Virus record (IMG/VR): IMGVR_UViG_3300044700_000691
Span: 124,001-188,000 of that record
Direction: 5' to 3' (one strand)
Length of the DNA: 64,000 nucleotides
This document shows positions 16,057 to 57,135 of this stretch, in pieces. A program made the position numbers and the translations under genes. A model generated the notes under the pieces. That model was not told the origin of the DNA, did not search any database, and was given only the letters and a program-made list of their open reading frames with translations. Positions within the stretch are counted from its first letter, which is position 1; the number at the start of each line of letters is the position of its first letter.

Positions 16057-17436
16057 ATGATAATAAGCTCTGAATTTAAACAAGAAGATTCTAAACTAGT
16101 AGTTTCATATTATGATGAAGCTGGTAATATTGCATATGCAGTAAAGCATATCCACGATGCTGATCAATTTAATTGGAAGCTGACGGGTCGCCCTTCGGAG
16201 TATCGAAATTGGGATAATAAATTTGTTGATAAAAGTAAAAGCAAATGGCTAAGTCGCTTCCGAATCGAAGAACTTATTCAAACCAGCTTTACTAAAGAAG
16301 AGCTTGATCAAATCTATTCTGAATATACTCCAAAGAAATATTTTCTCGATATTGAGATTCAGTTAACTTCAAACGAGTTCCCCGATCCAGCCAAAGCTGC
16401 CATGCCAGTAAACTTAATTTCATTTTGTGGTCCAGATAATGTAACCTATATTTTATCCACAATGAAAAAGCTAGATAACGAAGCTATTTCTAAAATGGAA
16501 GCAGAGATTAATGAATACCTAAGTGCACAAGGCCAGGTATTTACACTTAAATATATGTTTTTTGAGAAAGAAGAAGACTTAATGTCAACCTTCTTCCATC
16601 GAATACTTCCAAAGCTTCCATTTATTACAGGTTGGAATGTAATTGAATTTGACTGGAAATATCTAATTAATCGATGCAAGCGCCTTAATATTAAACCAAT
16701 GGAATCTATGGTTTGTGATAGGCTAATCGGTAAAGGTCAAGCGCCAGTTCATTTAGGTCTACTCGATTATCTTGAAGTATTTATGAACCTTAAACCAATT
16801 AAAGTTGTTGAAAATTACAAGCTTGATTACATTTCTCAATTAGTGCTTGGAGTAAGTAAATTACATCACGAATATGGTTCAATGATGGAAGCTCAACAAG
16901 ATGTTGAAAACTTCGTAAAGTATAACGCAATTGACGTAATGCTTGTTAAATTAATTGAAGATAAGCTAAGTCTACTTGATGTAGCCTTCGCTATTTCCAA
17001 AACTGCACAAGTTGATGTATCGAAAGTCTTTAGTGCAGTGTTTATTACAGAATCCCTAATGTGTCGCCACTTTTTACGAGATGGTAAGAAAATGGCATCA
17101 GACAAAAGAGATTTAGCCGAACAGGTAACATACGAAGGTGCCTATGTAAGTAAGCCTATTCCAGGTCACCATAAATATGTTTCATGCTTTGACTTTTCGT
17201 CAATGTACCCTAACGTTCAAATCCAGTTTAATATTTCTCCTGATACATACTTAGGTAAAATGAAACCTGGTCATATTCTTAAAGAGGATGAAATTTATAC
17301 AAAAAATGGTACCCTTTTTACTAAGAAGAAAGACTCAGCTGCTCGAGTTATACTAAAATCAATGTACGATCGACGTATGGGTATTAAAGGGCATATCACT
17401 GAATTAAAACAAGCAGCGAAAAAAGCCGCACACTAA
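16057..17436 (+). CDS. gp43A: Family B DNA polymerase, N-terminal half (exonuclease + motif A), ending in the fingers
   Basis: ExoI FLDIEI, ExoII GWNVIEFDWKYL, ExoIII YNAIDV, then YEGAYV and motif A FDFSSMYP. Stops after ILKSMYDRR, lacking motifs B and C. Confidence 0.92.
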   Translation: MIISSEFKQEDSKLVVSYYDEAGNIAYAVKHIHDADQFNWKLTGRPSEYRNWDNKFVDKSKSKWLSRFRIEELIQTSFTKEELDQIYSEYTPKKYFLDIEIQLTSNEFPDPAKAAMPVNLISFCGPDNVTYILSTMKKLDNEAISKMEAEINEYLSAQGQVFTLKYMFFEKEEDLMSTFFHRILPKLPFITGWNVIEFDWKYLINRCKRLNIKPMESMVCDRLIGKGQAPVHLGLLDYLEVFMNLKPIKVVENYKLDYISQLVLGVSKLHHEYGSMMEAQQDVENFVKYNAIDVMLVKLIEDKLSLLDVAFAISKTAQVDVSKVFSAVFITESLMCRHFLRDGKKMASDKRDLAEQVTYEGAYVSKPIPGHHKYVSCFDFSSMYPNVQIQFNISPDTYLGKMKPGHILKEDEIYTKNGTLFTKKKDSAARVILKSMYDRRMGIKGHITELKQAAKKAAH

Positions 17437-18026
17437 TGATAAAATGGTTAAAAAACAAAATAAACAAATATATGTACGATATTGATGCACTCGCCCAAAC
17501 TAGAGATTTTATTATGGGCAAAGATTACCAATGGGTAAATACCCCAGATAATACCAAAATGTCAACAATTACCAAGGTAGTTGACGTATTTAGTAGAGGA
17601 GGCCTAATGGCTGTAAAATTAGCTGATGGCTCTAGTATAAGTTTAGAAGAACTTAATACTAAATTAATGGCAATTATGGATGGACAAGAAGCTTTAACTA
17701 GAGCCGAATGTATGTCTATTAGAGGGCCAGTAATTGATCCAAATATAACTAACGCAGAAGCCTTGCCTAAAGTTAGTCAACCTGTTCAAGCTGAGGTCCA
17801 AGCTACGTTAAAATCTGCAGGTATATTTGAAATGTTTGCGACTGAGGAGTCTTTACTAAACCTAAATTTAAGAGTAAACTTGCCTTCACTTAACTTATTG
17901 AAGATGATGTACAAGAACTCACAGAACAAGTCAGAATTTTTAACAGAGTTAGCAAACCATATAAATAATCAAATAACAGCAGATCATATTAAAGATGCCT
18001 TGCTGAAAAAACTTGATTCTAAATAG
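17436..18026 (+). CDS. Hypothetical protein
   Basis: 196-aa ORF whose start overlaps the polymerase N-half stop (TAATG). Confidence 0.75.
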   Translation: MIKWLKNKINKYMYDIDALAQTRDFIMGKDYQWVNTPDNTKMSTITKVVDVFSRGGLMAVKLADGSSISLEELNTKLMAIMDGQEALTRAECMSIRGPVIDPNITNAEALPKVSQPVQAEVQATLKSAGIFEMFATEESLLNLNLRVNLPSLNLLKMMYKNSQNKSEFLTELANHINNQITADHIKDALLKKLDSK

Positions 18027-18376
18027 TGGAGCTAATTATTTTACCAATTGAAGTCTCGGATTCAGAAAAAATACGAGCAATTTACTGTAAGCCAGATGGC
18101 GAACCAGTTACAATAAAAATTGATCATGCTAAAGATGCGTCGAGTTTTTCTGCAATTAAACGCATGTATCAAGAGATTGGGGTAGAAGACTTAGAACAAT
18201 CTAGAATATTTAAATTAGGAAAAATAGACAAGGACCTGTGTTTTGCTGTTAATGTTAGCGGGCTAAAAGCTGACTCAGATTTAACCAGAGTACCTTTCTA
18301 TAAAGTAATGCAAGGCGAGCATTCAAATTCAAAATTACTTGCTGCAAGCTTCCTAACTATATCATACTTTGCCTAA
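18026..18376 (+). CDS. Hypothetical protein, possibly degenerate Nudix fold
   Basis: DASSFSAIKRMYQEIGV loosely resembles a Nudix box but lacks the canonical REuxEE. Confidence 0.5.
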   Translation: MELIILPIEVSDSEKIRAIYCKPDGEPVTIKIDHAKDASSFSAIKRMYQEIGVEDLEQSRIFKLGKIDKDLCFAVNVSGLKADSDLTRVPFYKVMQGEHSNSKLLAASFLTISYFA

Positions 18377-18404
18377 GATCCTTTATCCCCTTCTGTGTAA
18401 AAGA
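18375..18404 (+). promoter_or_regulatory. Variant early/middle promoter AAGATC-N16-GTAAAAGA
   Basis: Intergenic, upstream of uvsX. Confidence 0.45.
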
Positions 18405-18430
18405 GGATATAACAAAAGGATTAAATATTT

Positions 18431-27185: not shown

Positions 27186-27764
27186 TTATTCTTCGTCTTC
27201 GTCAGTTAATTCTTCCGACTCGTCCTCTTCTGGCATTTCTGCAACTCTTTGAATAGCTGCTTTAAATATTTCAACACATTCGTCTTTTTCGATTTCCATT
27301 TTTTCGCAAGCAATTTCTAAAATTTCTTTTAGTTCATCACTAAACTCTTCCATAAACATTTCAAGAGCTTCTTCGTCGATTTCTGGAGTTTCTTCTATTT
27401 CAGTGTCTTTAATTTCTTCGTCTTCTTCAAACATATAGTTTTCAAATTGAGGAACATGACTTTCTTTTACTATTGTAACGCCCATTGCTGGAGTCGTATT
27501 TAAAGGTTCTTCGATTTTAATCTTAGCTGCACGACTTGGTACATCACTATTAAAAGCTTTCCAATAACTATCGTTATTATGATTCTTTCCGCCATTTTCA
27601 AAGTTAGCGTCTCTTTTTGCAATATTAGTCCATTCTTTTAAAGACTTTCTTTTAGATTTATCAAATGACTCAGTTTCGTTAGGTCCACCAAACGACGGAG
27701 CCTTTATATCCATAAATCTTTTAAAGTCTTTAACAGCGCTGCTTTTTAGGTTAAAAATATCCAT
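27186..27764 (-). CDS. Acidic hypothetical protein; putative internal head/core protein
   Basis: Follows the tail tube gene. Carries VKDFKRFM and VPQFENYMFEE motifs and has a very acidic C-terminal half. Confidence 0.75.
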   Translation of the reverse strand: MDIFNLKSSAVKDFKRFMDIKAPSFGGPNETESFDKSKRKSLKEWTNIAKRDANFENGGKNHNNDSYWKAFNSDVPSRAAKIKIEEPLNTTPAMGVTIVKESHVPQFENYMFEEDEEIKDTEIEETPEIDEEALEMFMEEFSDELKEILEIACEKMEIEKDECVEIFKAAIQRVAEMPEEDESEELTDEDEE

Positions 27765-27785
27765 TTAGCTTTAGGTTTTTAATTT

Positions 27786-28373
27786 TTAGAATTGTCCGTT
27801 TCTGGTTTCAGTATAGCTATCTGCAACGAATTGGAATGCTGTTGTATAGATTGCATCACCTTCGTATTTCAAATCCATTTCACCAGTTAAATTATCTCCG
27901 TAAACAAATACTGGAGAGAATGTGAATTCTCTATAGATATCGCCGGCTCTGTTGTGTATACCTACATAAATGTTGGCACCGTTTGGAGCATAGTCCTTTT
28001 TAAGACCTTGACGACCAGTTAATGGATCGTATACTAGGTTACCCCATGCTCTAAATTGATTGTAAATATACATTTCATTTGCGTCATTTAAGTTGACTTC
28101 AAACTCAATTGTAAGTTTTGCACCAGTTTCCTTAGGAGCTGCTGCCGCGAAATATCTTTTAGAGAATCTGTACTTTTGTTCAGCCAATGTACCGGTACCA
28201 GCTTGTTCTGGTAAACCTTTAATTGATTTTACGTGCTCAACCAATAATGGGGTAATTGTATTATTGTTGATTGATGCAGGAGGGGTAATAATTACCGTGA
28301 ACTGGTTAAGGTATAACGGTTCAAATAGATTACGACCTACTGTTGAATTTTTAAAATGTGGTAAACCTGCCAT
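27786..28373 (-). CDS. gp19: Tail tube protein (gp19-like)
   Basis: MAGLPHF..FEPLYLNQF, LTIEFEVN, FRAWGNLVYDPLTG..GLKKDY; 195 aa, after a late promoter. Confidence 0.8.
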   Translation of the reverse strand: MAGLPHFKNSTVGRNLFEPLYLNQFTVIITPPASINNNTITPLLVEHVKSIKGLPEQAGTGTLAEQKYRFSKRYFAAAAPKETGAKLTIEFEVNLNDANEMYIYNQFRAWGNLVYDPLTGRQGLKKDYAPNGANIYVGIHNRAGDIYREFTFSPVFVYGDNLTGEMDLKYEGDAIYTTAFQFVADSYTETRNGQF

Positions 28374-28393
28374 TTATATTGGACCTTTTTGTT

Positions 28394-28401
28394 TATTTAT
28401 T
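28394..28401 (-). promoter_or_regulatory. Late promoter-like AATAAATA (tube)
   Basis: 20 nt upstream of the tube ATG. Confidence 0.65.
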
Positions 28402-28408
28402 CTTTGAG

Positions 28409-29587
28409 TTATGCATTATCTCTACGCTCGTCTTCCTCCCATTTGGTAAGAAGCTTTTTAAACTCAGCTTCTTTTTGTTCTGGAGTCATGGTTTTTGTTC
28501 TATTGAACTCTAACTCATTTATTCTACGCTTTAACTCTCTTGCACTAACTTCGTTATAAGTCTTTGCGGTTTGAGTTGATGGTAGAGATTCGTTTCCAAC
28601 AATATCTAAATCTAACGTTGGAATAACTGCAACAATTAAGTTTCCAGCATAGACTGGATCATCGCTTTGAAAATCTTCAAGCTTCATATCAAAGCTTGCA
28701 CCAAATAATTTAGTTAATCTAGTAGAAGCTGGTGTAATTGAAATAGTAAATTTATCGGCGTTTGCTATTTTATCGCCGCCTAATTCCTTTAACATGTTAT
28801 TTGACATTAAATATCTAAATTTAATGTTTTTTTCGCCAGAACCTTCTTCAATCATTCGTAACTTATTTGTTTTAATAGTTACATAATAATTACAGCAGTC
28901 TTCTTCTGGTTTTTCTTCAATTGTACACTCTTTTTCAACTTCCTCTAGCGTTTTGTATGGGCCAGACGCAAGTTTTATCTTACCCTTAGCTTCAATATCA
29001 GTTCCAATTAAAGATTCTATAGTTGGAGCAGTTTCGCCAGACTTAACCTCGATTGTATGTATTACTTTATTCTCGTCTTCCATTGTTAAACAATAAAAAA
29101 GAGATTCGGCCGGAGCCGGTAGCAATTTTTGATCTTCTGGATCTTCTTTTGTATATTGAGCTGCATCATATGGAATAGTTGCAGGCAAGCCTGGTTTTTG
29201 TATAACAGCAGGTAGTCCTGGTTTTTGAGTAACTGCAGGCAATCCAGGTTTCTGAATAGTCGCAAGTTCCTTACTTCCTTGAACAGCAGGTAGATTAGAT
29301 CCTCCGGCTGGAAGCTCAAGAGCTTCGTTTTTAGTAGACTTGCTCTTCTTTTCATTAACATAACCACAAATAACTTTGTGTATTGCAAGTAAAAGGTCAC
29401 GTATTTTATCTGCACCTGTATACTTTACATAGGTAGAATTTCCATAGGCATCTACAAAATCTAGGTCAGGGTACACATTAAAGTTGTGCAAAACGGTTTT
29501 TTGATCGTTTTGGTTCCAAACTGGCTCGCAGTCTTTAACTTGCCATTTAAGTTCGTGACTTTGAAAAATTTCGCAGATTACTCCCAT
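28409..29587 (-). CDS. Hypothetical protein with internal 9-aa repeats
   Basis: 392-aa ORF containing (I/T)QKPGLPA(V/T) repeats. Confidence 0.75.
   Translation of the reverse strand: MGVICEIFQSHELKWQVKDCEPVWNQNDQKTVLHNFNVYPDLDFVDAYGNSTYVKYTGADKIRDLLLAIHKVICGYVNEKKSKSTKNEALELPAGGSNLPAVQGSKELATIQKPGLPAVTQKPGLPAVIQKPGLPATIPYDAAQYTKEDPEDQKLLPAPAESLFYCLTMEDENKVIHTIEVKSGETAPTIESLIGTDIEAKGKIKLASGPYKTLEEVEKECTIEEKPEEDCCNYYVTIKTNKLRMIEEGSGEKNIKFRYLMSNNMLKELGGDKIANADKFTISITPASTRLTKLFGASFDMKLEDFQSDDPVYAGNLIVAVIPTLDLDIVGNESLPSTQTAKTYNEVSARELKRRINELEFNRTKTMTPEQKEAEFKKLLTKWEEDERRDNA
29181..29261 (-). repeat. 27-bp imperfect coding tandem repeat x3
   Basis: Units start at 29181, 29208 and 29235 (gcaggcaagcctggtttttgtataaca and variants); a degenerate fourth unit follows. 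Confidence 0.85.
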
Positions 29588-29591
29588 TTAA

Positions 29592-30077
29592 TTATGCTTG
29601 TGGTTTTTCTCCTCTAAAGGCTTTACCTTTATTGGAATCTTTTCTTTCTGGATCAACTGTTTTATAGTTTGCCCAAATTTCATTGTATATTCGACAGCTT
29701 GCTCCCATAAAATTAATAATGCCGACAAATTTCTTACGATCATCGCCAGTCATCTTGGAAACTTTTCTTCCAATACGTCGAGCATCGTCAAGATCTAATT
29801 CTTCTTCGTCATCTTTACCAACTAATTCTTTAAGAGAATTTCTTTTCTTTTCATTTAGTTGAATAAAAGACTCAAACGTCATTGATCTTGAGTCTTCAGC
29901 ATATGCTGACTCATGGTCAGCTGCATATGATTCAAATCGATCAAGCTCGTCGCCAGTCATTAGACCAGTTGCATACATAACAAATCTTTCATAAAGATCT
30001 GCTCTTTCCTGCATAGGAATACCTGCTTCATCCATATATTGAATTATGCTAGGAGGTACGCTTAGTGTAATCCTCAT
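29592..30077 (-). CDS. Hypothetical protein with internal capsid-targeting-like motif
   Basis: SMTFESFIQLNE-KKR in mid-protein. Confidence 0.75.
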   Translation of the reverse strand: MRITLSVPPSIIQYMDEAGIPMQERADLYERFVMYATGLMTGDELDRFESYAADHESAYAEDSRSMTFESFIQLNEKKRNSLKELVGKDDEEELDLDDARRIGRKVSKMTGDDRKKFVGIINFMGASCRIYNEIWANYKTVDPERKDSNKGKAFRGEKPQA

Positions 30078-30088
30078 CGAGTTTTTAA

Positions 30089-30608: not shown

Positions 30609-30625
30609 TGACCTCTTAAAATAAG

Positions 30626-42483: not shown

Positions 42484-42484
42484 T

Positions 42485-42751: not shown

Positions 42752-42752
42752 G

Positions 42753-43229: not shown

Positions 43230-43232
43230 CGT

Positions 43233-43520
43233 TTATGACTTTTTATTTAGTTGGCGCTTTACCTCGGCTCTAACCTTTTCCATCTTTTTAGCATAGGCTG
43301 GATTATCATTACGATTAAATACAATTTGCTGGTTAAGGCTACCTGTAATTTTTCTCATATCGCCGCCTCTAGTTTTAATTAACCATGAAGCTAAGGCTTT
43401 GATTCCAAGGCTTTTAAATCTACCATTTGCATCAGGGGCATTTGAATCGTGCCAATCTGGTGAGTTTTTGGTTTTTCTTGCCTCTGTAATAAATTCTGTG
43501 TATGTAAGTATATTATTCAT
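43233..43520 (-). CDS. Basic hypothetical protein with N-terminal targeting-like motif (start probably ATG 43520)
   Basis: MNNILTYTEFITE-ARK. Confidence 0.75.
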   Translation of the reverse strand: MNNILTYTEFITEARKTKNSPDWHDSNAPDANGRFKSLGIKALASWLIKTRGGDMRKITGSLNQQIVFNRNDNPAYAKKMEKVRAEVKRQLNKKS

Positions 43521-43524
43521 ATAA

Positions 43525-44052
43525 TTACCAGTACCCCGGATAAGTTTTACCGCCCCAAAGATGAGCATATCGATTTATTCGGCAAGCCCAATATCCAGCT
43601 TTGGTTTTGTCTTTCTTTAGGTGACATTGATGTCTAGCTGCAAATGATGCTCTAGCCTTTGGATTGCTTACCTTTGCGGTAAGGCCTCCATGGATATCGC
43701 CGAATGCAATTTTAATGATTTTGCCAGTTTTTGGATTTTTAACGTAGACATGATACTTTTTAGCACCACCTCGTTTTGGATAGTTTAGGTCAACTTCTCG
43801 ACCTTTATATTCAGCCTCATTAAGTTCTTCAATTGGAAAATCTAGTGGCACTGGCTCCCCTAAATATTCTCCAATAAAACCTAAATCAGTTTTTATGAAT
43901 AATTCCTCTGTAATAGAATCAAATGTAACCCCATTTTCAAAATAAAACCTAGCCTCAGTTAATAACGAAATATGTGCATCACTGCCCGGCCTAAAGGCGG
44001 ATTCGGCAATACATATATTTTCATTTAAATGATACTGTAGATTAGGCGACAT
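43525..44052 (-). CDS. Conserved phage hypothetical protein, basic C-domain with His/Cys cluster
   Basis: LNE-AEYKGREVDL..KKYHVYVKN..FGD..SFAARHQC..GYWAC. Confidence 0.75.
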   Translation of the reverse strand: MSPNLQYHLNENICIAESAFRPGSDAHISLLTEARFYFENGVTFDSITEELFIKTDLGFIGEYLGEPVPLDFPIEELNEAEYKGREVDLNYPKRGGAKKYHVYVKNPKTGKIIKIAFGDIHGGLTAKVSNPKARASFAARHQCHLKKDKTKAGYWACRINRYAHLWGGKTYPGYW

Positions 44053-44066
44053 TTAATAATTAGATT

Positions 44067-44411
44067 TTAGTATTCCTTTGGGTCTTCTTGAATTAGTTCC
44101 TTATCTTGAGAATCGTTAACTTCATTAATTAAAAAGTTAAATACCTCTTCTACGTCATCTTTTGATGTAGCAATATGGTCAGCTGCCCATGCGTGTCCGT
44201 TTTTCAAAATTTCATCAACACTAGACTCGTCCATTTCTAATAAAAGATCAACACATCTTTTAATTGTTTTAAGATTTCCAAAAAACATATAATTTTCATA
44301 TTCAGCTTCATGTGAATCTTCTTTGCTGTGTATTGGTTCAGCTGCTAGTTGAATTTGAGTTGGCTCGAAATCTTCTTGTGAAAATGATTCGAAAGTTTTA
44401 ATTTTTTGCAT
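44067..44411 (-). CDS. Hypothetical protein with N-terminal targeting-like motif
   Basis: MQKIKTFESFSQE; NGHAWAADHI. Confidence 0.75.
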   Translation of the reverse strand: MQKIKTFESFSQEDFEPTQIQLAAEPIHSKEDSHEAEYENYMFFGNLKTIKRCVDLLLEMDESSVDEILKNGHAWAADHIATSKDDVEEVFNFLINEVNDSQDKELIQEDPKEY

Positions 44412-44412
44412 T

Positions 44413-46026
44413 TTACTTTTTATTTAAATTTTTATAAAAGCTAGTAAAGTCTAAAATATTTCTATTAGCTTTTTTAGATTTCTTTGGTTGAAAATTATCA
44501 CCAGAACCTGGTGAAGTTTGAGTTGGCGCAATTGGATTACCCATGCCGCCGATACTTGCTGGTGTTTGCATTGCTACACCTGGTGATGCAACATCCTCTT
44601 TAACTTGACCGGATCCAACTTTAGTTGCTCCTTTAATTTTACTTTGTGGTGCATCTAGTCCGCTTTCTGCACTTGTAAATAAGAAGCGTGTCCACTTTTC
44701 AGCTTTTAATTGAGCCTCTTTACCACCAGTCACCTTGGCAGTTCTTGAAATGGTTCTTCCAATAATAGGTAAAGTTGCTTGTCTAAATCTTGCGAGTTGA
44801 GCTCCAAGATTCTTTTGCTCTTCTCCTTGATATTCGACAGTTGCCGATAGCGTACCAAGATAGGTTCCAATCTTTAGTAGATAATTAATTCGGCTGGAGT
44901 CTAACATTTGTTTAGACGTAATTGCAATTTTAGTTCTTTCAAATAGAGGAAGCTTAATTTCTGGAGAATAGGCAACTCCCTTATAACGACTTATGTCAAG
45001 GTCAGTTTTATATTTTCCAAGACGAGTCCTTGCCTCTAAGTATGCCTCAATTGCCTCAACCATATATTGTTTCTTGGCCGAATCGTCGAGAGTCTGTAAC
45101 ATAGTTCGACGTTTTGTAATAGCATCAATTTCGCCTCGCTCATCCGTCATAATCATAATACGAACTTTTACAAATTGAGACTCTAATGTATTTAGGTCTG
45201 GCCAATTTCTAAGTTCTTCGATTGCATTTCTAATAATAACGTCACGTTTAACTAATTTCTCAGCCTTACCGCCAGTTCGCTTATTAAAATCCTCTGACGA
45301 TTTCTTGAAGTCGTCAACATCATTATCCATTTCCGTTTGAACTTCTTCCCATTCAACATCAATAATATCTGGTTCAGGCTTCTTTTTATCCTCATCTTTA
45401 TTTGAAAAGTCTGAAATAATATAGGCTACCTTTACCGAGTCTTCTGCTGTTTTTCTAAAGTCTTCAGAATCTGCAGTCGTACCATCCATTTTTTCCTTGG
45501 CAGAGCTAACTAATGTTTTAGTAACCTCAGCTTCAGTTTTCTTTTGATCAGTAAATGAAATTTTAATTTTATCAAGCAGGTCATTAACCTCGGCTGTCCA
45601 ATTGCTCTCCTCAATGGTTTGATATGCTTCCCATACAATAGCCATTCGACCTTTGTATGCTCGTATTCTCTCTAACTGTAATTCAATGTCTTCGCCATCT
45701 TTAATCATTTGATCAAGAACTTCGGTTTCAATTTTTAAAGTTTGAGAAATAAAATCAATATACTTATTTAAAATATCAATCCATTCTTTATTAAGAAAAG
45801 CTTGGCTTAATTGCTGAAGAACCTGAGGATCAGTCTTTGCCTTATTTAAAATATCATTTTCGATAAGTCTTGATAAAAACTCATCGACCTTCTTCATGAT
45901 ATCCTCCTCCTTTTTATTGGAGCCTTTGGCAAATGTGATAATATCAGAAATTTCATTTCCAATAATAATTAATTCAGATTCTAATAGAAGCTGTTCGAGG
46001 ATATGTATGTGTTTAAATTTCAGCAT
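44413..46026 (-). CDS. Large helical hypothetical protein; putative internal head protein
   Basis: N-terminal LEQLLLE-S and C-terminal NILDFTSFYKNL; 537 aa. Confidence 0.75.
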   Translation of the reverse strand: MLKFKHIHILEQLLLESELIIIGNEISDIITFAKGSNKKEEDIMKKVDEFLSRLIENDILNKAKTDPQVLQQLSQAFLNKEWIDILNKYIDFISQTLKIETEVLDQMIKDGEDIELQLERIRAYKGRMAIVWEAYQTIEESNWTAEVNDLLDKIKISFTDQKKTEAEVTKTLVSSAKEKMDGTTADSEDFRKTAEDSVKVAYIISDFSNKDEDKKKPEPDIIDVEWEEVQTEMDNDVDDFKKSSEDFNKRTGGKAEKLVKRDVIIRNAIEELRNWPDLNTLESQFVKVRIMIMTDERGEIDAITKRRTMLQTLDDSAKKQYMVEAIEAYLEARTRLGKYKTDLDISRYKGVAYSPEIKLPLFERTKIAITSKQMLDSSRINYLLKIGTYLGTLSATVEYQGEEQKNLGAQLARFRQATLPIIGRTISRTAKVTGGKEAQLKAEKWTRFLFTSAESGLDAPQSKIKGATKVGSGQVKEDVASPGVAMQTPASIGGMGNPIAPTQTSPGSGDNFQPKKSKKANRNILDFTSFYKNLNKK

Positions 46027-46445
46027 TAGTCTAGGGTTAATCTGTATGCAAGTTTATTCTTTAATGATAAAAACTCGTCTCTTACATTGTATAATTCAGT
46101 GTTTGTTTCTTGATCAAATATTTCACAAAAATCTTGTTGAAATACTCTTTCGATATTTTGAATAAAAATTGGCATTGCTTGATCGTAGTCCATAACTAGA
46201 ATTGCGCAGCCTCCAACTTTAAATCTGCCAAATTTACCAATGATCTGTTCAGCAATTTCATCAACTAATCCTAAGAAATCATCATAAAATGCACCAAATG
46301 CATTGTGTTGAGCTTCGTTTGTAGTTTGCCAATGTAAAATATGAGCCTGGTCTCTAATTTGCAGTAGACTTAACATAAATGTAGATACATCCATGGCATC
46401 AGTCTGTGGCTCGTCTAACCCGCTTTGTAATTCAAATGGAATCAT
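46026..46445 (-). CDS. Dps/ferritin-like four-helix protein (start probably ATG 46445)
   Basis: QAHILHWQT..AQHNAFGAFYDDF..LVDEIAEQ matches ferritin-like HxxHW...H...Y...D..AE. The ATG overlaps the upstream stop (ATGA). Confidence 0.7.
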   Translation of the reverse strand: MIPFELQSGLDEPQTDAMDVSTFMLSLLQIRDQAHILHWQTTNEAQHNAFGAFYDDFLGLVDEIAEQIIGKFGRFKVGGCAILVMDYDQAMPIFIQNIERVFQQDFCEIFDQETNTELYNVRDEFLSLKNKLAYRLTLD

Positions 46446-46621
46446 TTCTTTGTAGTATGTTTTTTCCAATCGGCGAATGGTTTAATCCAAAAGGTCCGAT
46501 TAGTTTCCTTTTGTAAAAGATCCATAATCTTATTGTCTCCACTTGGATGCTGCATAACTGCATTTTCCAATCTGGCTTTACCCTGAAGATAAGCTTTGTA
46601 GTTTTTCTGAGAAGAATTCAC
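46442..46621 (-). CDS. Small hypothetical protein, 59 aa (not in the track)
   Basis: GTG 46621 to TGA 46442, 19 nt after a late promoter, with an ATGA overlap into the next gene. Confidence 0.6.
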   Translation of the reverse strand: MNSSQKNYKAYLQGKARLENAVMQHPSGDNKIMDLLQKETNRTFWIKPFADWKKHTTKK

Positions 46622-46640
46622 AAGTTTCGCCCTTTTAGGA

Positions 46641-46648
46641 TATTTATT
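46641..46648 (-). promoter_or_regulatory. Late promoter-like AATAAATA
   Basis: Heads the minus-strand run 46621 to 41764. Confidence 0.6.
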
Positions 46649-46663
46649 AGAGCAAGGCTAGAC

Positions 46664-49558
46664 TTATTCTTGAGGAGCAGTTGAGAATGAATCCATGTTA
46701 AGATCTATTCCCAATAGAGAGTCAGATGAAGTAGATTTAGGTCTAATATTATTAGCCTGTTCAATCTTAAAGTATTTAAGCTGATCATCTGTAATCTTTC
46801 CGTTAATTAAAACATAGTCTCCTGTGTGTTTACTAACTGCCATAAAATATGTGCCGTCCTGTAAATATCGATCAAACTCAATCTTTAATACTCCATTTAA
46901 ATAGACACCAGTATTAAATGTACCGTCTTCTGCGATTGCACCGTTAAATACAGCAGTCAACTCATCTTTGTAGTTCTTATAGATTAGGTTGAATCCGGCT
47001 GCTAAAATTTCAACAACCTCTTCTTTAGTTGAAGCTTGAACAGCAGCTGTAATTCCTTGGCTAAAATATTCTTTTCTTGGAGTAGCAGAAGCTGATGGTG
47101 TAAATGCCGTAGAGTTTTCAAAATACTCTGGCACTTCCTGTTTAGCTGCAGTAAATAGATCGGCTAAACCTTTTCTAATATAGTTTCCAGTATCTGCTCC
47201 CATACCAGTACCGCTTTGTCCAGTTAATCTAAAATTATCTCCGCTTGATTTAATTTCAATTAAATCTGTCTTAATTTTAATATCGCCCTTATCTCTATTT
47301 CCAGCGTTTACCGCATCCTTAATTAAGATTGACATTAAAATTTCGCCGCGACCAATGTTTACATTACCAACTGACCCAATTAAATTAAAAAGCTGATCAT
47401 ATAGTGCTGGGCTAAGACCTGTCGTATCAAATAAGGTTTTTAGATTGCCGTTTGGGCTATTTGTAATATCTTCAAATGTAATAGTTGGATTATCTAAATA
47501 CACCAATAGGTCATCGTCTTGATCAAGATCGTCCGCAATTGAAACAATGGTTTTTGCTAAATCTTTATAGCCTTTACCTGTGCCGAGAATATCAAATAAC
47601 TCTTTATTTACGTCGTTATGGGTTCTCTTTAATAGTTTTTCAATCTTTTTATAGAGAGCCTCATTATATGGTGCATCAATAATTAAATCAAGCAGGTCAC
47701 TTTTCTTTTTATCAAGCTCTGCAACTGAAATCGACTCAGTTAAAAGGGATTCTTCAATCTCCTTTGTCATATTATAAAACTCTGAGTGTAGAGGCTTACT
47801 GGTTATGTTTTTATACAAAACAAAATCTTGGTTTTTAACTGAATTAACAAGCTCTGCTTCTAGTTCAATTTTAGGTACTTCTACTACCTTTAACTGAGAT
47901 GGAATTTTTGCGTATGGAGCTCTCTTATTAATACGATTTAGGTCAATTACTAAATCTGGCACAAACTCTAAGTTGGTTGCAATTGCTTTAATTGAATAAC
48001 CTTGGCCAATTGCACCAATTAATTCATCTATTCCAACTGAATCTACAGTTGAACCGCCTACTACATAATCTGAAGTTTTTGATAATCGGTCAATTGAATT
48101 TTTGACTGTTTCCGAAGACATTGGAAAAGCTGAACTTCTTTGTCCAGGGTGATACGCTACCATTAAACAAGGAACATCATACTTTCCTTTAATATTAGCT
48201 GCGATTTTTTCGTGTTCTTTACTTAGAGGTTGAAATTTATCTAGGTAAATAACGATTTCAATATCTTTTTTTTTAGTTTGATTTGCTTGAAATTGACTAA
48301 AAAAATCTGAGGCATCCTCATCTGTACCAAAAAATTGATTAAATGTTGGAAAAAATGCCTCGTTTAATTTATCCTCTGCTGCAAGTTGAACTTTAGCAAT
48401 TTGGGATTTTAGAGTTTCTTTCATAGTTTTATTAAAAAAGGTTGAGCTAACTCTAATATTTTTCTTTCTAAATGTATTTAAGAAAACTCTGTACAATTCC
48501 TTAAGAGTTTTATCTGAATCGATTAATCTAATTACCATATCATCATTGATCAAGACACGATTAACATCAAACTCCGGCTTATTTAGGAATTCTGGAGTTG
48601 TTATTTCAAGACCGCGATATTTGCTACCGTGCTCCTGTATAAAATCTTTAAATATTGCATTTATAATTTGAATATAACGTCTTTCAAATGTTGTACCATC
48701 TGGCTTAATTGCATCAAGGTCTGCTTGTGAATAGGTTTCAATAAAATTCATTAAGTCAGCTGTCATAATCCAAATGTAATCATCAGTCTTTGGTGCAGCT
48801 ACTCTGTCTTGTGCCTTTTCCTTTGCTCTTGCTTGGAAAACCGGGTCAACTAATTTTGCTAAAAATACTGAATCTTCTCCGCCTGGTTCATAGAATCTAA
48901 AAACAATACCTTCGATATCTTTGTCAGCGGTGTCTCTTAAAAAAGAGGTTCTAAGTTCAGGATTAAGAACATTAATAATGTATTTGGTAAAAGATGCAGT
49001 TTTAAATTTTCCAACTAACTCATCAAGCGGAGTATAGACAAAATCTAAAATTTTCTCTTTTTGATCATCTGTTAGTTTTCCTTGAAAAATAATTGGTGGG
49101 CGCTCGATATCTAAAATATCCGCCCATTTGTCTAATTCTGCCTTATCTTGGATAGTCTCAGCCTGTTCGCCAGCTTTATCCAATATATGAATATAACTTA
49201 GGATCAAGTGGTTTTTAGGTAATCTATCGTATTGTATTGATTGAGCAGTCGGTGAACTAAAATACTCCATTCCAAAATGATAGTTACATGGAAGTTTTTC
49301 AATTGAGTCAGCCGATAATTCATCGAAGTGTTTAAGTGCAGGGTTATAGTATGAACTTAGGACACGATCTACACCTGTTAATTTAGTATTACGTTTAAAA
49401 AATTCAAATGGTTCTTCGGAATTTCCACAATTTCTTTGTGCACCAAAAAATGCACCGTCCATTTTTTCGTTAACAATAACTTCTTTATTAAGAAGAGCCT
49501 CTAAAAATTCTTTGCCCTTTTTTTCGTAAATGTCCTTTAAGTGGTTTAGTCCTGCCAT
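46664..49558 (-). CDS. Multidomain protein: Rnl2-like nucleotidyltransferase/ligase + degenerate HxGH NTase + PD-(D/E)xK nuclease-like
   Basis: EKMDG (motif I), FGMEY, IEGIVFR (IV), LAKLVDP (V); YLDKFQPLSKEHEKI; GRGEIL..GDIKI..IEIKS. Confidence 0.7.
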   Translation of the reverse strand: MAGLNHLKDIYEKKGKEFLEALLNKEVIVNEKMDGAFFGAQRNCGNSEEPFEFFKRNTKLTGVDRVLSSYYNPALKHFDELSADSIEKLPCNYHFGMEYFSSPTAQSIQYDRLPKNHLILSYIHILDKAGEQAETIQDKAELDKWADILDIERPPIIFQGKLTDDQKEKILDFVYTPLDELVGKFKTASFTKYIINVLNPELRTSFLRDTADKDIEGIVFRFYEPGGEDSVFLAKLVDPVFQARAKEKAQDRVAAPKTDDYIWIMTADLMNFIETYSQADLDAIKPDGTTFERRYIQIINAIFKDFIQEHGSKYRGLEITTPEFLNKPEFDVNRVLINDDMVIRLIDSDKTLKELYRVFLNTFRKKNIRVSSTFFNKTMKETLKSQIAKVQLAAEDKLNEAFFPTFNQFFGTDEDASDFFSQFQANQTKKKDIEIVIYLDKFQPLSKEHEKIAANIKGKYDVPCLMVAYHPGQRSSAFPMSSETVKNSIDRLSKTSDYVVGGSTVDSVGIDELIGAIGQGYSIKAIATNLEFVPDLVIDLNRINKRAPYAKIPSQLKVVEVPKIELEAELVNSVKNQDFVLYKNITSKPLHSEFYNMTKEIEESLLTESISVAELDKKKSDLLDLIIDAPYNEALYKKIEKLLKRTHNDVNKELFDILGTGKGYKDLAKTIVSIADDLDQDDDLLVYLDNPTITFEDITNSPNGNLKTLFDTTGLSPALYDQLFNLIGSVGNVNIGRGEILMSILIKDAVNAGNRDKGDIKIKTDLIEIKSSGDNFRLTGQSGTGMGADTGNYIRKGLADLFTAAKQEVPEYFENSTAFTPSASATPRKEYFSQGITAAVQASTKEEVVEILAAGFNLIYKNYKDELTAVFNGAIAEDGTFNTGVYLNGVLKIEFDRYLQDGTYFMAVSKHTGDYVLINGKITDDQLKYFKIEQANNIRPKSTSSDSLLGIDLNMDSFSTAPQE

Positions 49559-49573
49559 AAATTTAAATTAGTA

Positions 49574-50074
49574 TTAGTCCAAAGATCCGTATTTTCCTGC
49601 TCCCATATCCTTTGCAAAATCTTTGCCAGCCTTTGAAGAAACGCTAAGGCTAATGCCTTTTAGTAAACCAGCATCCTCTGGGTTCTCTTCAAAATAGGTA
49701 ATTAAGCTAGCTAGGTTAACATTTTGATATGGTTGAATTGTTCCTTCTGGTAGTTTTTTTTCTAATTCTCTACCAGATGAATAGTCTTTCCAGTTAAGAT
49801 TCCAACAATAAAATCTAACTTCTTCTTTCATTTTTGTTGTATAGTAACGGTCAACATCTGCAAGTCTGGCTTGAACTTCAGAAAGATCAGTTTTATATGA
49901 AGTCGAGTGGCCATAGATATCAGCTGGTGTTCCAATGCTTAAACTATCTGATGTAATATCAGTCAATTTAACTAGTTGGTCCATAAGTTCCTGAAATGGT
50001 AATCCTTTAAGTGCCTCAGATTCTTCTGCTTCGTTTAGGAACTGCTTAAAGTTTCCAATAGTGCGTTTTGTCAT
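49574..50074 (-). CDS. Hypothetical protein with N-terminal targeting-like motif
   Basis: MTKRTIGNFKQFLNE-AEE, after a late promoter. Confidence 0.75.
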   Translation of the reverse strand: MTKRTIGNFKQFLNEAEESEALKGLPFQELMDQLVKLTDITSDSLSIGTPADIYGHSTSYKTDLSEVQARLADVDRYYTTKMKEEVRFYCWNLNWKDYSSGRELEKKLPEGTIQPYQNVNLASLITYFEENPEDAGLLKGISLSVSSKAGKDFAKDMGAGKYGSLD

Positions 50075-50095
50075 TTTATAGTTGCCTATTTCTGA

Positions 50096-50695
50096 TTATT
50101 TATCCCGAACTAATCTTTGGATTAACTCGCAAAACTCATCAACTGAGTCTTGACTAAAATTATTTGTAAAATGGTCAAAGGAATTACCTTCACGAGCATC
50201 TTTAAATCTAAATGGCGCATCTTCAATCAATTTTAGCATAAGTCGCTTTTCTTCTTTTGCTGAAACTAATCCATCCCATAGGTCTTTTTTGCGAGCCTGA
50301 TCCTGTTTAAATTCATCTGGTGCATCAATCATAATAGTTTTGCAGTTTTGGTAGCCCGGTCTTTTAATTAAGCCATATAGCTCAGATTGAGCTTGACTAA
50401 ATTCCAAGCGATTCCAAATGGTTGCCCAAGTAGCTGCGGTAATATGAGCTCTATCAAATACAAAAATCTTATCGGGAAAATGCTCATGTAGATCAAGTAT
50501 TGTCATAATATTACCCATACTAAAATAGTGAATACCAGAATCAGATTTATCCCATTCTTTAACTATTGCTGAATATTCATCAGCTAGGTAAAATTTATAA
50601 TAAAATAGATTTAATTCATCACCGTGTAGCTTAACCAGTTGATTAAGTAAATGGGTTTTGCCTGAGTGACGGGTACCTTCAATAAAAATTATCAT
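50096..50695 (-). CDS. P-loop nucleoside monophosphate kinase (thymidylate-kinase-like)
   Basis: IIFIEGTRHSGKT Walker A and VFDRAH (the TMPK DR motif). Confidence 0.75.
   Translation of the reverse strand: MIIFIEGTRHSGKTHLLNQLVKLHGDELNLFYYKFYLADEYSAIVKEWDKSDSGIHYFSMGNIMTILDLHEHFPDKIFVFDRAHITAATWATIWNRLEFSQAQSELYGLIKRPGYQNCKTIMIDAPDEFKQDQARKKDLWDGLVSAKEEKRLMLKLIEDAPFRFKDAREGNSFDHFTNNFSQDSVDEFCELIQRLVRDK
50097..50104 (-). promoter_or_regulatory. Late promoter-like GATAAATA
   Basis: 22 nt upstream of ATG 50074. Confidence 0.6.
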
Positions 50696-51222
50696 GAGTA
50701 TTTAAGTTGTATTCTTTCTCTTGATAATATACCAATATTTCCATTAATTTGGAGCAATTCGGTCTTATCAACAAACCAATATTCAATTGATTTTGTAATC
50801 TTACTTAGGTATGGATCTTTAGTGTATTTGTCTATTTGAACTAGAGAATCTTCAAATATTCGGATTTTATCAAAAGACGGCCCGACTGTATCTAAATATT
50901 CAAGTAGCATTTGCGGCTTATCTGTATTACGCTCGCATAGAATAATTTGGTTAAATGTTTTGGTAATTCCAAAATTATCTAAAACTGCCTCCATTGCCTT
51001 TCTGGTTGCAGCTACCCGGTGGCTTAGAATTATTGTAGTGTGATCCTTATCCAGTTTGTTAAAAACCGACTCGATTAGTTGCAATCTATATAGATTGGTA
51101 TTTAGGGATTTTGGATTATCGAACCACTCATATGGTTTTTTGAACTCTGTACCAGCATGGGTAAATGGGGGAACCCTAAATAAGGTTTCATCAAAATCTA
51201 CGACGTTTAAAACTTTCTCCAT
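50692..51222 (-). CDS. HAD-superfamily phosphatase (start probably ATG 51222)
   Basis: VVDFDETLF..P, IILSHR, DK and IRIFEDS; the pattern resembles the RNA-repair-associated HAD family. Confidence 0.75.
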   Translation of the reverse strand: MEKVLNVVDFDETLFRVPPFTHAGTEFKKPYEWFDNPKSLNTNLYRLQLIESVFNKLDKDHTTIILSHRVAATRKAMEAVLDNFGITKTFNQIILCERNTDKPQMLLEYLDTVGPSFDKIRIFEDSLVQIDKYTKDPYLSKITKSIEYWFVDKTELLQINGNIGILSRERIQLKYS

Positions 51223-51226
51223 ATGA

Positions 51227-51234
51227 AATAAATA
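51227..51234 (+). promoter_or_regulatory. Late promoter-like AATAAATA
   Basis: 25 nt before TTG 51260; divergent from and overlapping the opposite promoter region. Confidence 0.4.
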
Positions 51235-51246
51235 ACTTTGAAATAA

Positions 51247-51275
51247 TATTATACTAAAATTGAACTTAGAGTTTA
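51247..51275 (-). promoter_or_regulatory. Putative early/middle promoter TAAAC-N16-GTATAATA
   Basis: Upstream of the HAD-kinase pair. Confidence 0.6.
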
Positions 51276-51721
51276 TAAAAGGGGAGTACGAAGGTAACAG
51301 AGTTAACTTGGTTAGGGAAACTATCCAAAGAAAACAGCCATTTTCCATCTTTACTTTCAGCAACCCAAAGATTTATCGTCAATTTTTAACAGATTTATCC
51401 AAATTTGCAACCTTGCCGTATGTTCGTCAAACATTTATGACAAATCATCAAATGGGAGGCTATCCTATCATCTATCCAAGCATCTTTATAACTAATGTTG
51501 GATCAGCCGTATCTGATCAAGACTTTAAAAATATGATGCTAGGCAGTTTAAAACAGTACCATATCGATTCTATAATTTGTCTCTATGCAGGTCAAATTAG
51601 TTCCTATTATAAAAATGGAGACAGGCACTCCATTGGAACAGATATCTACACTTCACTCAATCCACAAGAATTTGATACATATTATTTTAAGGTTGAGAGT
51701 ACTTGTTACACCTTTGTTTAA
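51260..51721 (+). CDS. Hypothetical protein
   Basis: 153-aa ORF with a TTG start. Confidence 0.65.
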   Translation: MNLEFIKGEYEGNRVNLVRETIQRKQPFSIFTFSNPKIYRQFLTDLSKFATLPYVRQTFMTNHQMGGYPIIYPSIFITNVGSAVSDQDFKNMMLGSLKQYHIDSIICLYAGQISSYYKNGDRHSIGTDIYTSLNPQEFDTYYFKVESTCYTFV

Positions 51722-55642: not shown

Positions 55643-55650
55643 TATTTATT
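55643..55650 (-). promoter_or_regulatory. Late promoter-like AATAAATA
   Basis: 12 nt upstream of ATG 55630. Confidence 0.5.
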
Positions 55651-55668
55651 AGTATTATACTAGTAGGT

Positions 55669-55697
55669 TAAACTAAGAACACCAACCGAGTAAAACA
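55669..55697 (+). promoter_or_regulatory. Putative early/middle promoter TAAAC-N16-GTAAAACA
   Basis: 7 nt before the ATG of the polymerase C-half. Confidence 0.6.
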
Positions 55698-55704
55698 CTT
55701 AAGT

Positions 55705-57135
55705 ATGCAAACAAAAGAACAATTAGACAAAGAGATTAAACGTCTTAATCTAGAGCAAAACGCTCTAAAAATCTTGATTAACTCGTTTTACGGAGCCTTC
55801 GGTAATAAGTATTTCTATTTTCACGATACAGATATTGCACAATCGATCACCCTACAAGGACAAGACCTTATTAAATTTTCAATTAAAGCAATTAATCACT
55901 ACTTTACAGAAAAGTGGCACCTTGATACAGAATTACATGAAAAGCTTGGCATATCCAATCTAAAGATTAATCAAGTTAAAGAAGAATCTGCAATTTATAC
56001 TGACACAGACTCATGTTATGTTAGTTTTCATCCAGCGATTAACTCAATCGAAGGTTTTCCTTTAAATGATACAGAAGCTCTTAAGTTTTGCTTGGCAATC
56101 AATCGCGAAAGACTAAGTGCCTATTTCAAAGCAGCCTTTCAAAAATATGCAACTGCATTTAATACTGATAATTGCCAAGAGTTTGAAATGGAAAATCTTT
56201 CTAGAGCCGCAATTTGGTGTGCTAAAAAGAAATACGTTCTTAAAGTAAGTTATGAAGACAATCCAGCTGAAGAGTTATCAGAAAAAGAAAGTCAAGTAGT
56301 AAAAGGTCTTGAAAAAGTTCAATCATCATATCCTATTTGGGCAAGAACCCATCTTGAAAAACTATACGACTTCTTTTTAGATCGCGGTTATGACTTAGAT
56401 CTTGAAGATGAGCTTATTCCTAAATTACAGGCCCTACGTGCTGAAATGGAAACTCTTTCGCCCGATGATATTTGTTTCTCGTTTTCTGTTCGTACCTATG
56501 ATAAGTATGTTAAGAGTGAACATCCTTTAAAATTAGATAAAGGTGTTCCAATTTATACTAGAGCTGCAGCTTATCATAATTTCATGTTAAAAGAAACAGG
56601 TAATATAAAATATAATCGTGTGCTAAGCGGTAAAGTTAAATTTTACTATGCTGCGCCCAATCCATACGAATTTGATATTTTTGCATTTTCTCCAGGAGTT
56701 TATCCAACTGAATTTGCTCTACCGATGGATAAAGATCAGCAGTTCTTTCGTTTAATTTGTGAACCTTTAAATAAGCTGCTTCTTGCAATGGGATTACCTC
56801 AAATTAATCCACAATTACGTCGTGCAATTGAAGTAGTTAAACACAGACCTAAAAAAGGTCAAGATATACAGTCTTTTCCGATTCATATCGTCGACTCTGA
56901 GACATTTGAAAATACCCTAGTTCCAGAGTCTCTTCAAGAGTTTATTGCAAATCCAGATTCAGCAATTCCACCTCAATTGATGCCACAATACTTAAGTATT
57001 GTATCTAAATATGGTTTAAATACAGTGGTTGTCCCAGATGCTGAACTTGCAAAATATATTGATAAAATTAAGAAAAAGAAAGCTACAAAAGCCGTTGTTG
57101 TCGAAGAAGATGAGATGGAGGAAGTAGAAGACTAA
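55705..57135 (+). CDS. gp43B: Family B DNA polymerase, C-terminal half (motifs B and C, thumb)
   Basis: QNALKILINSFYGAFG (motif B), SITLQGQ, IYTDTDSCY (motif C), KKKYVL, VKGLE..SS.P. Confidence 0.93.
   Translation: MQTKEQLDKEIKRLNLEQNALKILINSFYGAFGNKYFYFHDTDIAQSITLQGQDLIKFSIKAINHYFTEKWHLDTELHEKLGISNLKINQVKEESAIYTDTDSCYVSFHPAINSIEGFPLNDTEALKFCLAINRERLSAYFKAAFQKYATAFNTDNCQEFEMENLSRAAIWCAKKKYVLKVSYEDNPAEELSEKESQVVKGLEKVQSSYPIWARTHLEKLYDFFLDRGYDLDLEDELIPKLQALRAEMETLSPDDICFSFSVRTYDKYVKSEHPLKLDKGVPIYTRAAAYHNFMLKETGNIKYNRVLSGKVKFYYAAPNPYEFDIFAFSPGVYPTEFALPMDKDQQFFRLICEPLNKLLLAMGLPQINPQLRRAIEVVKHRPKKGQDIQSFPIHIVDSETFENTLVPESLQEFIANPDSAIPPQLMPQYLSIVSKYGLNTVVVPDAELAKYIDKIKKKKATKAVVVEEDEMEEVED

Follow-up and report, generated by a model that had tools for sequence, protein, structure and literature searches.

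Two distant phage genes that encode complementary halves of one gp43-type DNA polymerase

Two half-length polymerase genes and their surroundings

The window analysed here – a stretch of 64,000 nucleotides from the IMG/VR record IMGVR_UViG_3300044700_000691 – carries two half-length family B polymerase genes, polN and polC, separated by 38,269 nt. Both ORFs occupy exactly the coordinates that a first-pass annotation of the same DNA had assigned to them, and the peptides it quoted for the end of the one and the start of the other are present. The features on which the argument draws are these:

15540..16028, + strand: dUTPase (Pfam PF00692, E 3e-18), ending 28 nt upstream of polN
16057..17436, + strand: polN, the N half (459 aa), with an N-terminal domain, a proofreading 3'-5' exonuclease, a palm piece bearing motif A, and fingers helix 1
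17434..17442, + strand: triple in-frame stop TAA TGA TAA closing polN, seen directly in the sequence
17436..18026, + strand: conserved 196-aa ORF of unknown family, syntenic and 34-38% identical in three relatives (L012, L015, L018)
18431-19624, + strand: UvsX-like recombinase, followed by a small ORF
19958-21445, + strand: gp41-type DnaB helicase, after the recombinase and the small ORF
27186..51363, - strand: virion gene block of about 24 kb between the halves, including a baseplate protein
30677-32266, - strand: major head protein, in the virion block
32284-34314, - strand: prohead protease, in the virion block
55705..57135, + strand: polC, the C half (476 aa), with fingers helix 2 and motif B, a palm piece bearing motif C and KKxY, and finally the thumb
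57140..58246, + strand: gp61-type DNA primase (phrog_47, E 4e-29), 4 nt downstream of polC
58242-58249: TATAAATA sequence
58255-58767, + strand: gp4-like head completion protein, followed by an ORF and then the portal gene
59445-61154, + strand: portal, downstream of the gp4-like gene

Matches to polN include the Pfam family DNA_pol_B_exo1 (E 3e-14) and positions 30-147 of the DNA_pol_B profile; residues 108-490 of RB69 gp43 align to it (phmmer against the PDB, E 3e-32), and the best Foldseek match of its predicted structure is to RB69 and T4 gp43 (E 1e-22). Its exonuclease motifs fit Exo I (DxE), Exo II (Nx2-3FD) and Exo III (Yx3D) of gp43-type family B enzymes: D98-I-E100, N194..F198-D199 and Y289..D293 are invariant across 21 N halves, as are D379 and Y384. 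The catalytic motif A, of the DxxSLYPS type, reads DFSSMYPN, and the first fingers helix comprises residues 428-458. The match continues in polC with DNA_pol_B positions 144-237 and RB69 gp43 residues 555-758 (phmmer against the PDB, E 2e-7), and RB69 and T4 gp43 are again the best Foldseek match (E 7.5e-8). Here the dNTP-binding motif B is KILINSFYG (KxxxNSxYG), motif C is YTDTDS (YGDTDS) and KKKY stands for KKRY; K22, N26, Y29, G30, D100, D102, K174, K175 and Y177 are invariant across 13 C halves, and the starts of polC homologues all agree to within about 4 residues. The dN/dS of polN (0.03-0.055) indicates strong purifying selection, a level equalled by polC (0.034-0.056).

The first-pass annotation had assigned the halves to separate operons, one with dUTPase and one with primase. 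The separation is borne out, with opposite-strand structural genes lying between the halves, and both neighbours are where they were said to be. The primase follows polC in every relative examined; the dUTPase, in contrast, is linked to polN only among the near relatives of the window, being absent in L012, L015 and L018 and missing upstream of polN at 63-67% identity. The likely start of the dUTPase gene is the ATG at 15540, although the ORF listing begins earlier, at TTG 15459. As a separate observation, dUTPase, thymidylate synthase and dCMP deaminase are all encoded by the phage.

Downstream of polN, the ATG of the 196-aa ORF overlaps the polN stop (TAATG), an arrangement that suggests translational coupling. 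This ORF occupies the position of the C half in uninterrupted relatives and has no match in Pfam or PHROG; a remnant of polC was considered and rejected, the two being unrelated (hhalign probability 0.1%). In uninterrupted cyanophage-type relatives (L045-L052) the order is gp43-uvsX-gp41, and the stretch from 18431 to 21445, with its UvsX-like recombinase and gp41-type helicase, would on this comparison be the ancestral downstream neighbourhood of gp43. The shared order argues that polN stayed in place and that polC moved.

One element of the first-pass annotation, a promoter of the same class before each half, found no support. Around both halves, shuffled sequence yields more sigma-70-like sites than the real one. 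The only places with a TTAGTAT...TA[AG] motif are upstream of the dUTPase gene and upstream of polC; this motif is a post hoc definition, however, and is not enriched. A further element, TTTGGTA[AC]ATTAAACC, is kept upstream of polC in relatives, and in the window a similar sequence, TTGGTATATTAACC, stands immediately upstream of polN; with 10 matches against 9.7 expected (pattern search allowing 2 mismatches), the element was dropped as evidence for a shared promoter.

Complementarity of the halves and their distribution

The two products amount to 935 aa, without a large insertion. By alignment they complement each other as halves of a single gp43-type polymerase, with the cut between the fingers helices. 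Placed on the single ORF of the uninterrupted relatives, polN residue 457 and polC residue 5 map 6 nt apart: the whole gene is tiled by polN and polC, with two codons left between them. With 15 aa in the tail of polN and 21 aa in the head of polC, the split enzyme has 36 aa where the fingertip of the whole enzyme has about 32 aa. There is accordingly no real gap or overlap, in agreement with the complementarity proposed at first pass. Alignment with 43A/43B of phage 44RR2.8t and with an uninterrupted relative shows the chain to be interrupted between helices N and P of the fingers; in RB69 numbering the N half extends to about residue 490-501 and the C half begins at about 539. Where the gp43 type is a single polypeptide, there are here two ORFs, the first of them closed by three stops.

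The first-pass annotation had pointed to related genomes as the place to look for the split and its spacing, and both recur there. Eleven independent IMG/VR contigs – from different samples and 56-100% identical – carry both halves on the same strand, 38.2-49.1 kb apart; four of these are genomes of about 271 kb in different circular permutations. Both flanking neighbourhoods are syntenic among relatives down to about 56% identity. No fragment was found beside an intact partner, an arrangement that would have told against the split: polC was near polN at none of 21 polN loci (10-kb flanks), and no leftover missing half was detected elsewhere in the window (tblastn, E<=10). In megaphage relatives (Lak / LR7565xx) the halves are 100-280 kb apart and on opposite strands. 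In the cultured Chryseobacterium phage MA9V-2 (OR513085) they are 3.5 kb apart, with three genes between them, including TnpB; a tblastn search with the C half of the relative P0084 returned no Chryseobacterium phage match.

Proteins consisting of the N half only make up 116 of the 150 nearest 50%-identity clusters, and on the tree split and whole forms interleave, with split forms predominating in the clade. The first-pass annotation had supposed a state fixed by a large rearrangement. The first part of that supposition survives: with the same two neighbourhoods and the 38-49 kb spacing kept down to about 56% identity, the arrangement appears to be both fixed and old. A one-off rearrangement it is not, the split polymerase being what a very large clade of environmental phages most commonly carries.

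Alternative readings and the proposed assembled enzyme

In family B polymerases, which use a two-metal mechanism, neither motif A alone nor motif C alone provides a polymerase active site. The halves might nonetheless not cooperate: one could be decaying, or the two could hold separate jobs (polN, for example, as a free-standing exonuclease), with replication left to another polymerase. The contig is at least 217 kb long and the window covers 64 kb of it, leaving space for such an enzyme, and Group 2.2 jumbo phages have been reported with an extra minimal Pol III alpha that is split between distant genes (PMC7824862). Against this stand the purifying selection, strong and of equal degree in the two halves, the invariance of polymerase-site residues on both sides of the break and the unfailing co-occurrence of polN and polC on the contigs of relatives, and we regard the absence of cooperation as improbable.

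We give even less credence to the idea that the halves are rejoined into a single-chain polymerase, be it by a split intein, by trans-splicing introns or by excision of the 38-kb segment. Inteins do visit the polymerase gene, as shown by the one inside motif C in the C half of the relative P0061, and the common strand of polN and polC makes excision possible in principle. But the first-pass reading of the locus as free of inteins, introns and homing endonucleases proved sound. Neither half contains an intein or endonuclease domain by Pfam, and an intein would have no room, since polN stops about 15 aa past its conserved helix and polC begins 21 aa before motif B. Searches of the 64-kb window gave no Rfam match, introns included, anywhere; tRNAs were likewise not found, and no repeat of 10 nt or more that could support excision is shared between the two junctions. 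Excision would moreover remove DNA carrying essential head, baseplate and replication genes, and in the megaphage relatives the opposite orientation of the halves and the still greater distance between them speak against any such route. As for a chimeric or mis-joined assembly of what is really one gene or two adjacent genes, the source is indeed a metagenomic contig, but the same order and gap on 11 contigs from different samples (four of them permuted genomes), the clean ends of both genes and the lack of polC at all 21 polN loci effectively refute it.

The most likely reading is an obligate two-subunit replicase, in which polN and polC would form an active heterodimer. More fully, we put at about 0.85 the probability that the polymerase consists of two polypeptides with a nick in the fingertip loop, that these make up a non-covalent active enzyme, and that this arrangement is of ancient origin, stable and widespread in a large uncultured T4-like clade.

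How would the halves come together? The first-pass annotation favoured a coiled coil of the fingers. The palm of family B polymerases is built of sequence from both sides of the fingers, and motif A lies in polN, with motif C and KKxY in polC. In monomer AF2 models the N-terminal and exonuclease domains (pLDDT above 85) and the thumb are confident, and pLDDT falls below 50 in the palm pieces and fingers helices (N half 349-396 and 426-437; C half 7-53 and 151-205), although the low interface values could partly come from shallow alignments (13 and 21 sequences). This division of the palm motifs, together with the loss of confidence in the palm pieces and fingers helices, makes assembly through the fingers coiled coil alone unlikely.

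We propose instead that the phage produces its T4 gp43 homologue in the form of two polypeptides, equivalent to a single nick in the fingertip loop. Each half would probably be translated from a transcription unit of its own, the two units being 38 kb apart, with polN in its ancestral gp43-uvsX-gp41 place and polC presumably relocated in front of the primase. The two would associate non-covalently into one active enzyme; the main interface would be the palm sheet shared by both chains together with the antiparallel pair of fingers helices, with additional exonuclease-thumb contacts as in RB69 gp43. The split state itself is old and stable, and it is widespread in a large clade of uncultured T4-like jumbo phages and megaphages.

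On this proposal, two unlinked genes can encode a replicative polymerase with no coupling through an operon or through co-translation, and unlinked polymerase genes would be normal for a very large group of environmental jumbo phages, Lak megaphage relatives included. There are practical consequences. Annotation pipelines and "PolB" marker phylogenies see two half-length proteins, and completeness checks could call polN or polC truncated; a survey of aquatic jumbo phages listed two polymerase VOGs and never used the word "split". A bolder suggestion, which we consider doubtful, is that the fingertip nick has been selected repeatedly, instead of being an accident that the phages tolerate, and that the unlinked halves are autonomous modules meeting in trans. 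Were this so, polymerase could be regulated by subunit supply, subunits could mix between co-infecting phages, and nucleotide selectivity could be altered at the open fingertip, as in an engineered Pfu split (where Q484R was also needed).

Comparison with known split polymerases

Fingertip splits and far-apart PolB halves have each been published already; their combination was not found in the literature, our search for a paper describing a distant fingertip split having lain largely outside subscription journals. Closest in kind are the fingertip-split gp43A/gp43B of Aeromonas phages 44RR2.8t, 25, 31 and 65 and of Acinetobacter phage 133 (Petrov et al. 2006, 2010, as cited in PMC3061061 and PMC2988022). 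The first-pass annotation had described these genes as neighbours, correctly: they are 49 nt apart in 44RR2.8t, and the accounts in the same two sources place T4-related gp43A and gp43B cistrons 2 bp to 3 kb apart. The proteins of phage 25 co-purify and are active (PMC2988022). The window pair shares with them the family, a break between the fingers helices, two independently translated cistrons and the lack of an intein. Whereas the 44RR2.8t-type cistrons are adjacent, however, those of the window are 38.3 kb apart, in separate operons with opposite-strand genes between; the residue at which the chain is broken is not that of 44RR2.8t, and the retained tip segments are unequal in length.

The DNAP-N and DNAP-C subunits of PhiKZ (gp82 and gp50) form a stable, interdigitated 1:1 heterodimer, as determined by cryo-EM (PMC13648687). 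This chimallivirus enzyme is likewise a jumbo-phage family B replicase from non-adjacent genes, its N subunit contributing motif A and its C subunit motif C. It is divided, in contrast, within a large insertion of the palm that precedes the fingers, leaving both helices in DNAP-C, whereas the window enzyme is divided between the helices; and the PhiKZ polymerase is highly divergent, totals 1369 aa and has an Rhc accessory subunit, unlike the compact, classic gp43 type of the window.

Outside the phages, the PolB of Methanobacterium thermoautotrophicum is a natural, intein-free enzyme whose two genes are 85 kb apart and whose products are made independently (Kelman et al. 1999, as cited in PMC3061061). 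It differs in being archaeal and in being divided within the palm, at a site that the same source places about 83 residues C-terminal to the fingertip position. Pfu SQ, split near the fingertip, reconstitutes wild-type-like activity from fragments that were each expressed and purified on their own (PMC3061061), and so demonstrates that the fold tolerates a fingertip nick without gene linkage; its altered use of gamma-phosphate-modified nucleotides appeared only in combination with Q484R (PMC3061061). Pfu SQ is an artificial, thermophilic enzyme from a bicistronic construct, whereas the split described here is natural, and the clade, with many natural fingertip-split enzymes, would offer a test bed for open-fingertip nucleotide selectivity.

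Homologous N-only and C-only genes are found in MA9V-2 and the Lak / LR7565xx megaphages, at 26-35% identity to the window halves. The gp43A/gp43B split is that of a few isolates, whereas the window type characterizes a huge uncultured clade. Taken together, the distances of 49 nt, 3.5 kb, 38-49 kb and 100-280 kb provide a natural series on the drifting apart of a split enzyme gene.

Anatomy of the two halves

16057–17436, plus strand: polN, the N half of a gp43-type DNA polymerase, 459 aa
55705–57135, plus strand: polC, the C half, 476 aa

The phage to which these genes belong (contig IMGVR_UViG_3300044700_000691, 216,815 bp) is a T4-like jumbo myovirus. Searches of the window against PHROG and Pfam identified NrdB, NrdA, a gp32-type SSB, dUTPase, UvsX, a gp41-type helicase, gp47/gp46, thymidylate synthase, dCMP deaminase, a Dda-like helicase and a gp61-type primase, together with a gp23-type major head protein, prohead protease, a baseplate protein, a gp4-type head completion protein, portal and tail sheath. 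The sheath (12181–15393, minus strand) is unusually long at 1070 aa; among relatives, good conservation is limited to its N-terminal part and C-terminal ~360 aa, and its middle contains a low-complexity Ala/Thr/Val-rich stretch.

The coordinates and anatomy of both halves are exactly as the first-pass annotation described them: polN carries Exo I–III and motif A (invariant across 21 aligned homologues), and polC carries motifs B, C and KKxY (invariant across 13). In Pfam, polN matches DNA_pol_B_exo1 and positions 30–147 of the DNA_pol_B profile, while polC matches positions 144–237 of that same profile. Alignment to solved structures pairs RB69 gp43 residues 108–490 with polN (E 3e-32) and residues 555–758 with polC, and the AlphaFold model of each half, taken separately, finds its best structural matches in RB69 and T4 gp43. 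That the halves are complementary is upheld by uninterrupted cyanophage-type relatives from IMG/VR (loci L045–L052), in which polN residue 457 and polC residue 5 fall only 6 nt apart inside one 818-aa ORF. Because the halves adjoin in such ORFs, and because the polN tail (15 aa) and polC head (21 aa) together approximate the fingertip length of that whole enzyme, the split is a clean nick in the loop joining fingers helix N to helix P.

Both halves have clean boundaries and are conserved: polN is terminated by TAA-TGA-TAA, the starts of polC homologues all lie within about 4 residues of each other, and dN/dS is 0.03–0.06 and equal for the two, indicating strong purifying selection. The submitters of one relative (P0106) labelled it 'DNA polymerase subunit B' in GenBank.

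Between polN and uvsX (17436–18376), in the exact position of the C half in uninterrupted relatives, lie two conserved ORFs of 196 and 116 aa, family unknown. The polN stop and the ATG of the 196-aa ORF overlap (TAATG), an arrangement suggestive of translational coupling; this ORF has no Pfam or PHROG match and no similarity to polC, and could be a polymerase accessory protein.

Distribution and history of the separated genes

Both halves occur on the same strand, 38.2–49.1 kb apart, in 11 contigs from different metagenomes (56–100% identity to the window's genes). Four of the 11 are ~271-kb genomes in different circular permutations, each with a 43.2-kb gap. Relatives keep both neighbourhoods: minus-strand sheath, then polN–orf–orf–uvsX–orf–gp41–orf–gp47; and dda, minus-strand orfs, then polC–primase–gp4–orf–portal. 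None of 21 polN loci examined with 10-kb flanks contains polC, and the window holds no remnant of either partner half. Given this recurrent spacing, the conserved neighbourhoods and the lack of a nearby partner, misassembly is excluded for practical purposes.

Scanned in full with HMMER, 1.84 billion cluster representatives yielded 5597 polN relatives (E ≤ 0.001). Among the best 150 clusters at 50% identity, 116 are proteins of 430–600 aa without C-half homology and 27 are whole enzymes. The two forms are intermixed on a FastTree phylogeny of the N-half region (with supported split/whole sister pairs, for example P0197/P0208), where well-supported branches require at least 12 changes between them; since that support is only moderately reliable, we leave the count loose and take the pattern to mean that the gene has repeatedly split and/or fused at the fingertip. 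All nine members of the window's clade are split. The arrangement is a state of the clade rather than the one-off rearrangement first envisaged. Because uninterrupted relatives have the order gp43–uvsX–gp41, polN is, judged by gene order, the half that stayed at the ancestral place, and polC the half that relocated to directly upstream of primase.

Wider and narrower spacings come from an annotated phage collection. In four uncultured megaphages the halves lie on opposite strands, ~101 kb (LR745206), ~132 kb (LR756502), ~281 kb (LR756504) and, in Prevotella phage Lak-A2, ~221 kb apart. In several of these the C-half match is in two pieces (LR745206.1, 130586–131938; LR756502.1, 120504–121853; Lak-A2, MK250019.1, 345586–347593); in Lak-A2 ~355 residues are spread over ~2 kb, a hint that something (an intein, an intron or a recoded stop) interrupts the C half. 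In Chryseobacterium phage MA9V-2, which is cultured, the halves are annotated as 'DNA polymerase II' (495 aa) and 'DNA polymerase family B' (425 aa); they lie 3.5 kb apart (L139:871–4172, record 150871–154172), with three genes between them, one annotated as a TnpB-family RNA-guided endonuclease; it may represent an intermediate stage with a mobile element sitting between the halves.

Rejoining, proposed assembly and expression

No means of rejoining the two halves was found. The absence of mobile elements noted at first pass is borne out: Pfam finds no intein domain in polN or polC, no Rfam family matches anywhere in the window, and the two junctions have no 10-mers in common. The intervening 38 kb includes essential genes, about 24 kb of it is on the opposite strand, and in more distant relatives the halves themselves are on opposite strands. 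Inteins do visit this split gene, as shown by a 719-aa polC homologue (P0061, 58% identical) whose motif C is interrupted by PF14890 between DTD and S (columns 104–284 of the C-half alignment A1), though this is away from the fingertip site.

Most likely, polN and polC form an obligate two-subunit replicase, whose association and activity we infer. The family B palm, as RB69 gp43 structures established, is built from sequence on either side of the fingers; the active site would therefore need the motif A aspartate of polN plus the motif C aspartates of polC. Rather than the fingers coiled coil alone that was first proposed, the interface probably comprises the palm as well as the fingers. Monomer AF2 models are confident for the polN NTD and exonuclease domain (pLDDT above 85) and the polC thumb. 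Confidence drops in the polN palm piece (residues 349–396, about 28), in part of its terminal helix 428–458 (below 50 over 426–437), and in the polC first helix and motif B (7–53) and palm strands (151–205; both below 50), a drop that shallow alignments may partly explain; the predicted pattern would fit a palm shared by two subunits. Each terminal segment is predicted to form a long helix, and at 31 and 32 residues the two match in length, as expected of a nicked helical hairpin. Published precedents show that such enzymes can work: phage 25 gp43A and gp43B co-purified and were active (PMC2988022), fingertip-split Pfu polymerase is wild-type-like even from separately purified fragments (PMC3061061), and gp82 and gp50 of PhiKZ assemble 1:1 into an interdigitated complex (PMC13648687).

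The halves do occupy separate transcription units, and the dUTPase linkage is present in the window but is lineage-specific rather than general. A promoter of the same class before both was not confirmed. The element TTATTTATTT(A/G)GTA(A/C)ATTAAACC is conserved ~40–70 nt upstream of polC in 56–63% identical relatives (L077, L091, L100, L114), and TTGGTATATTAACC, which resembles it, is located 15 nt before polN in the window (16029–16042); the element may be a phage-specific promoter, though it lacks statistical support inside the window. Sites with the T4-type late promoter sequence TATAAATA are depleted in the window, numbering 3 against an expected 9.5 (17960–17967, plus; 34334–34341, minus; 58242–58249, plus). 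The prohead protease and gp4-like head completion genes, both typical late genes, each have one of these sites immediately upstream. These observations suggest T4-like late transcription, with a promoter boundary between primase and gp4. Upstream of polN, polC and primase (16026–16056, 55674–55704, 57136–57139) the sequence is A/T-rich and contains nothing resembling a Shine-Dalgarno site; this would fit a Bacteroidota-type candidate host, with which the nearest cultured relatives, Chryseobacterium and Prevotella phages, likewise agree.

Relation to known split polymerases

In the searchable literature, with partial coverage of subscription papers, we found no account of a fingertip split combined with complete gene unlinking, nor of such a state prevailing throughout a large environmental clade; given that coverage, an earlier description may exist elsewhere. 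A comparative jumbo-phage study does not mention an unlinked fingertip split (PMC7824862), and a 2025 account of aquatic jumbo 'moraphages', not necessarily the same lineage as ours, lists two 'DNA-directed DNA polymerase' VOGs without the word split (PMC12619734). Fingertip splits with adjacent cistrons are already published for T4-like phages (PMC3061061, PMC2988022), and the first-pass statement that such genes are neighbours is correct: in Aeromonas phage 44RR2.8t they are 49 nt apart, whereas here the distance is 38 kb. Far-apart halves are known from Methanobacterium PolB (85 kb; PMC3061061) and PhiKZ (PMC13648687), but the former is split in the palm and the latter at a palm insertion.
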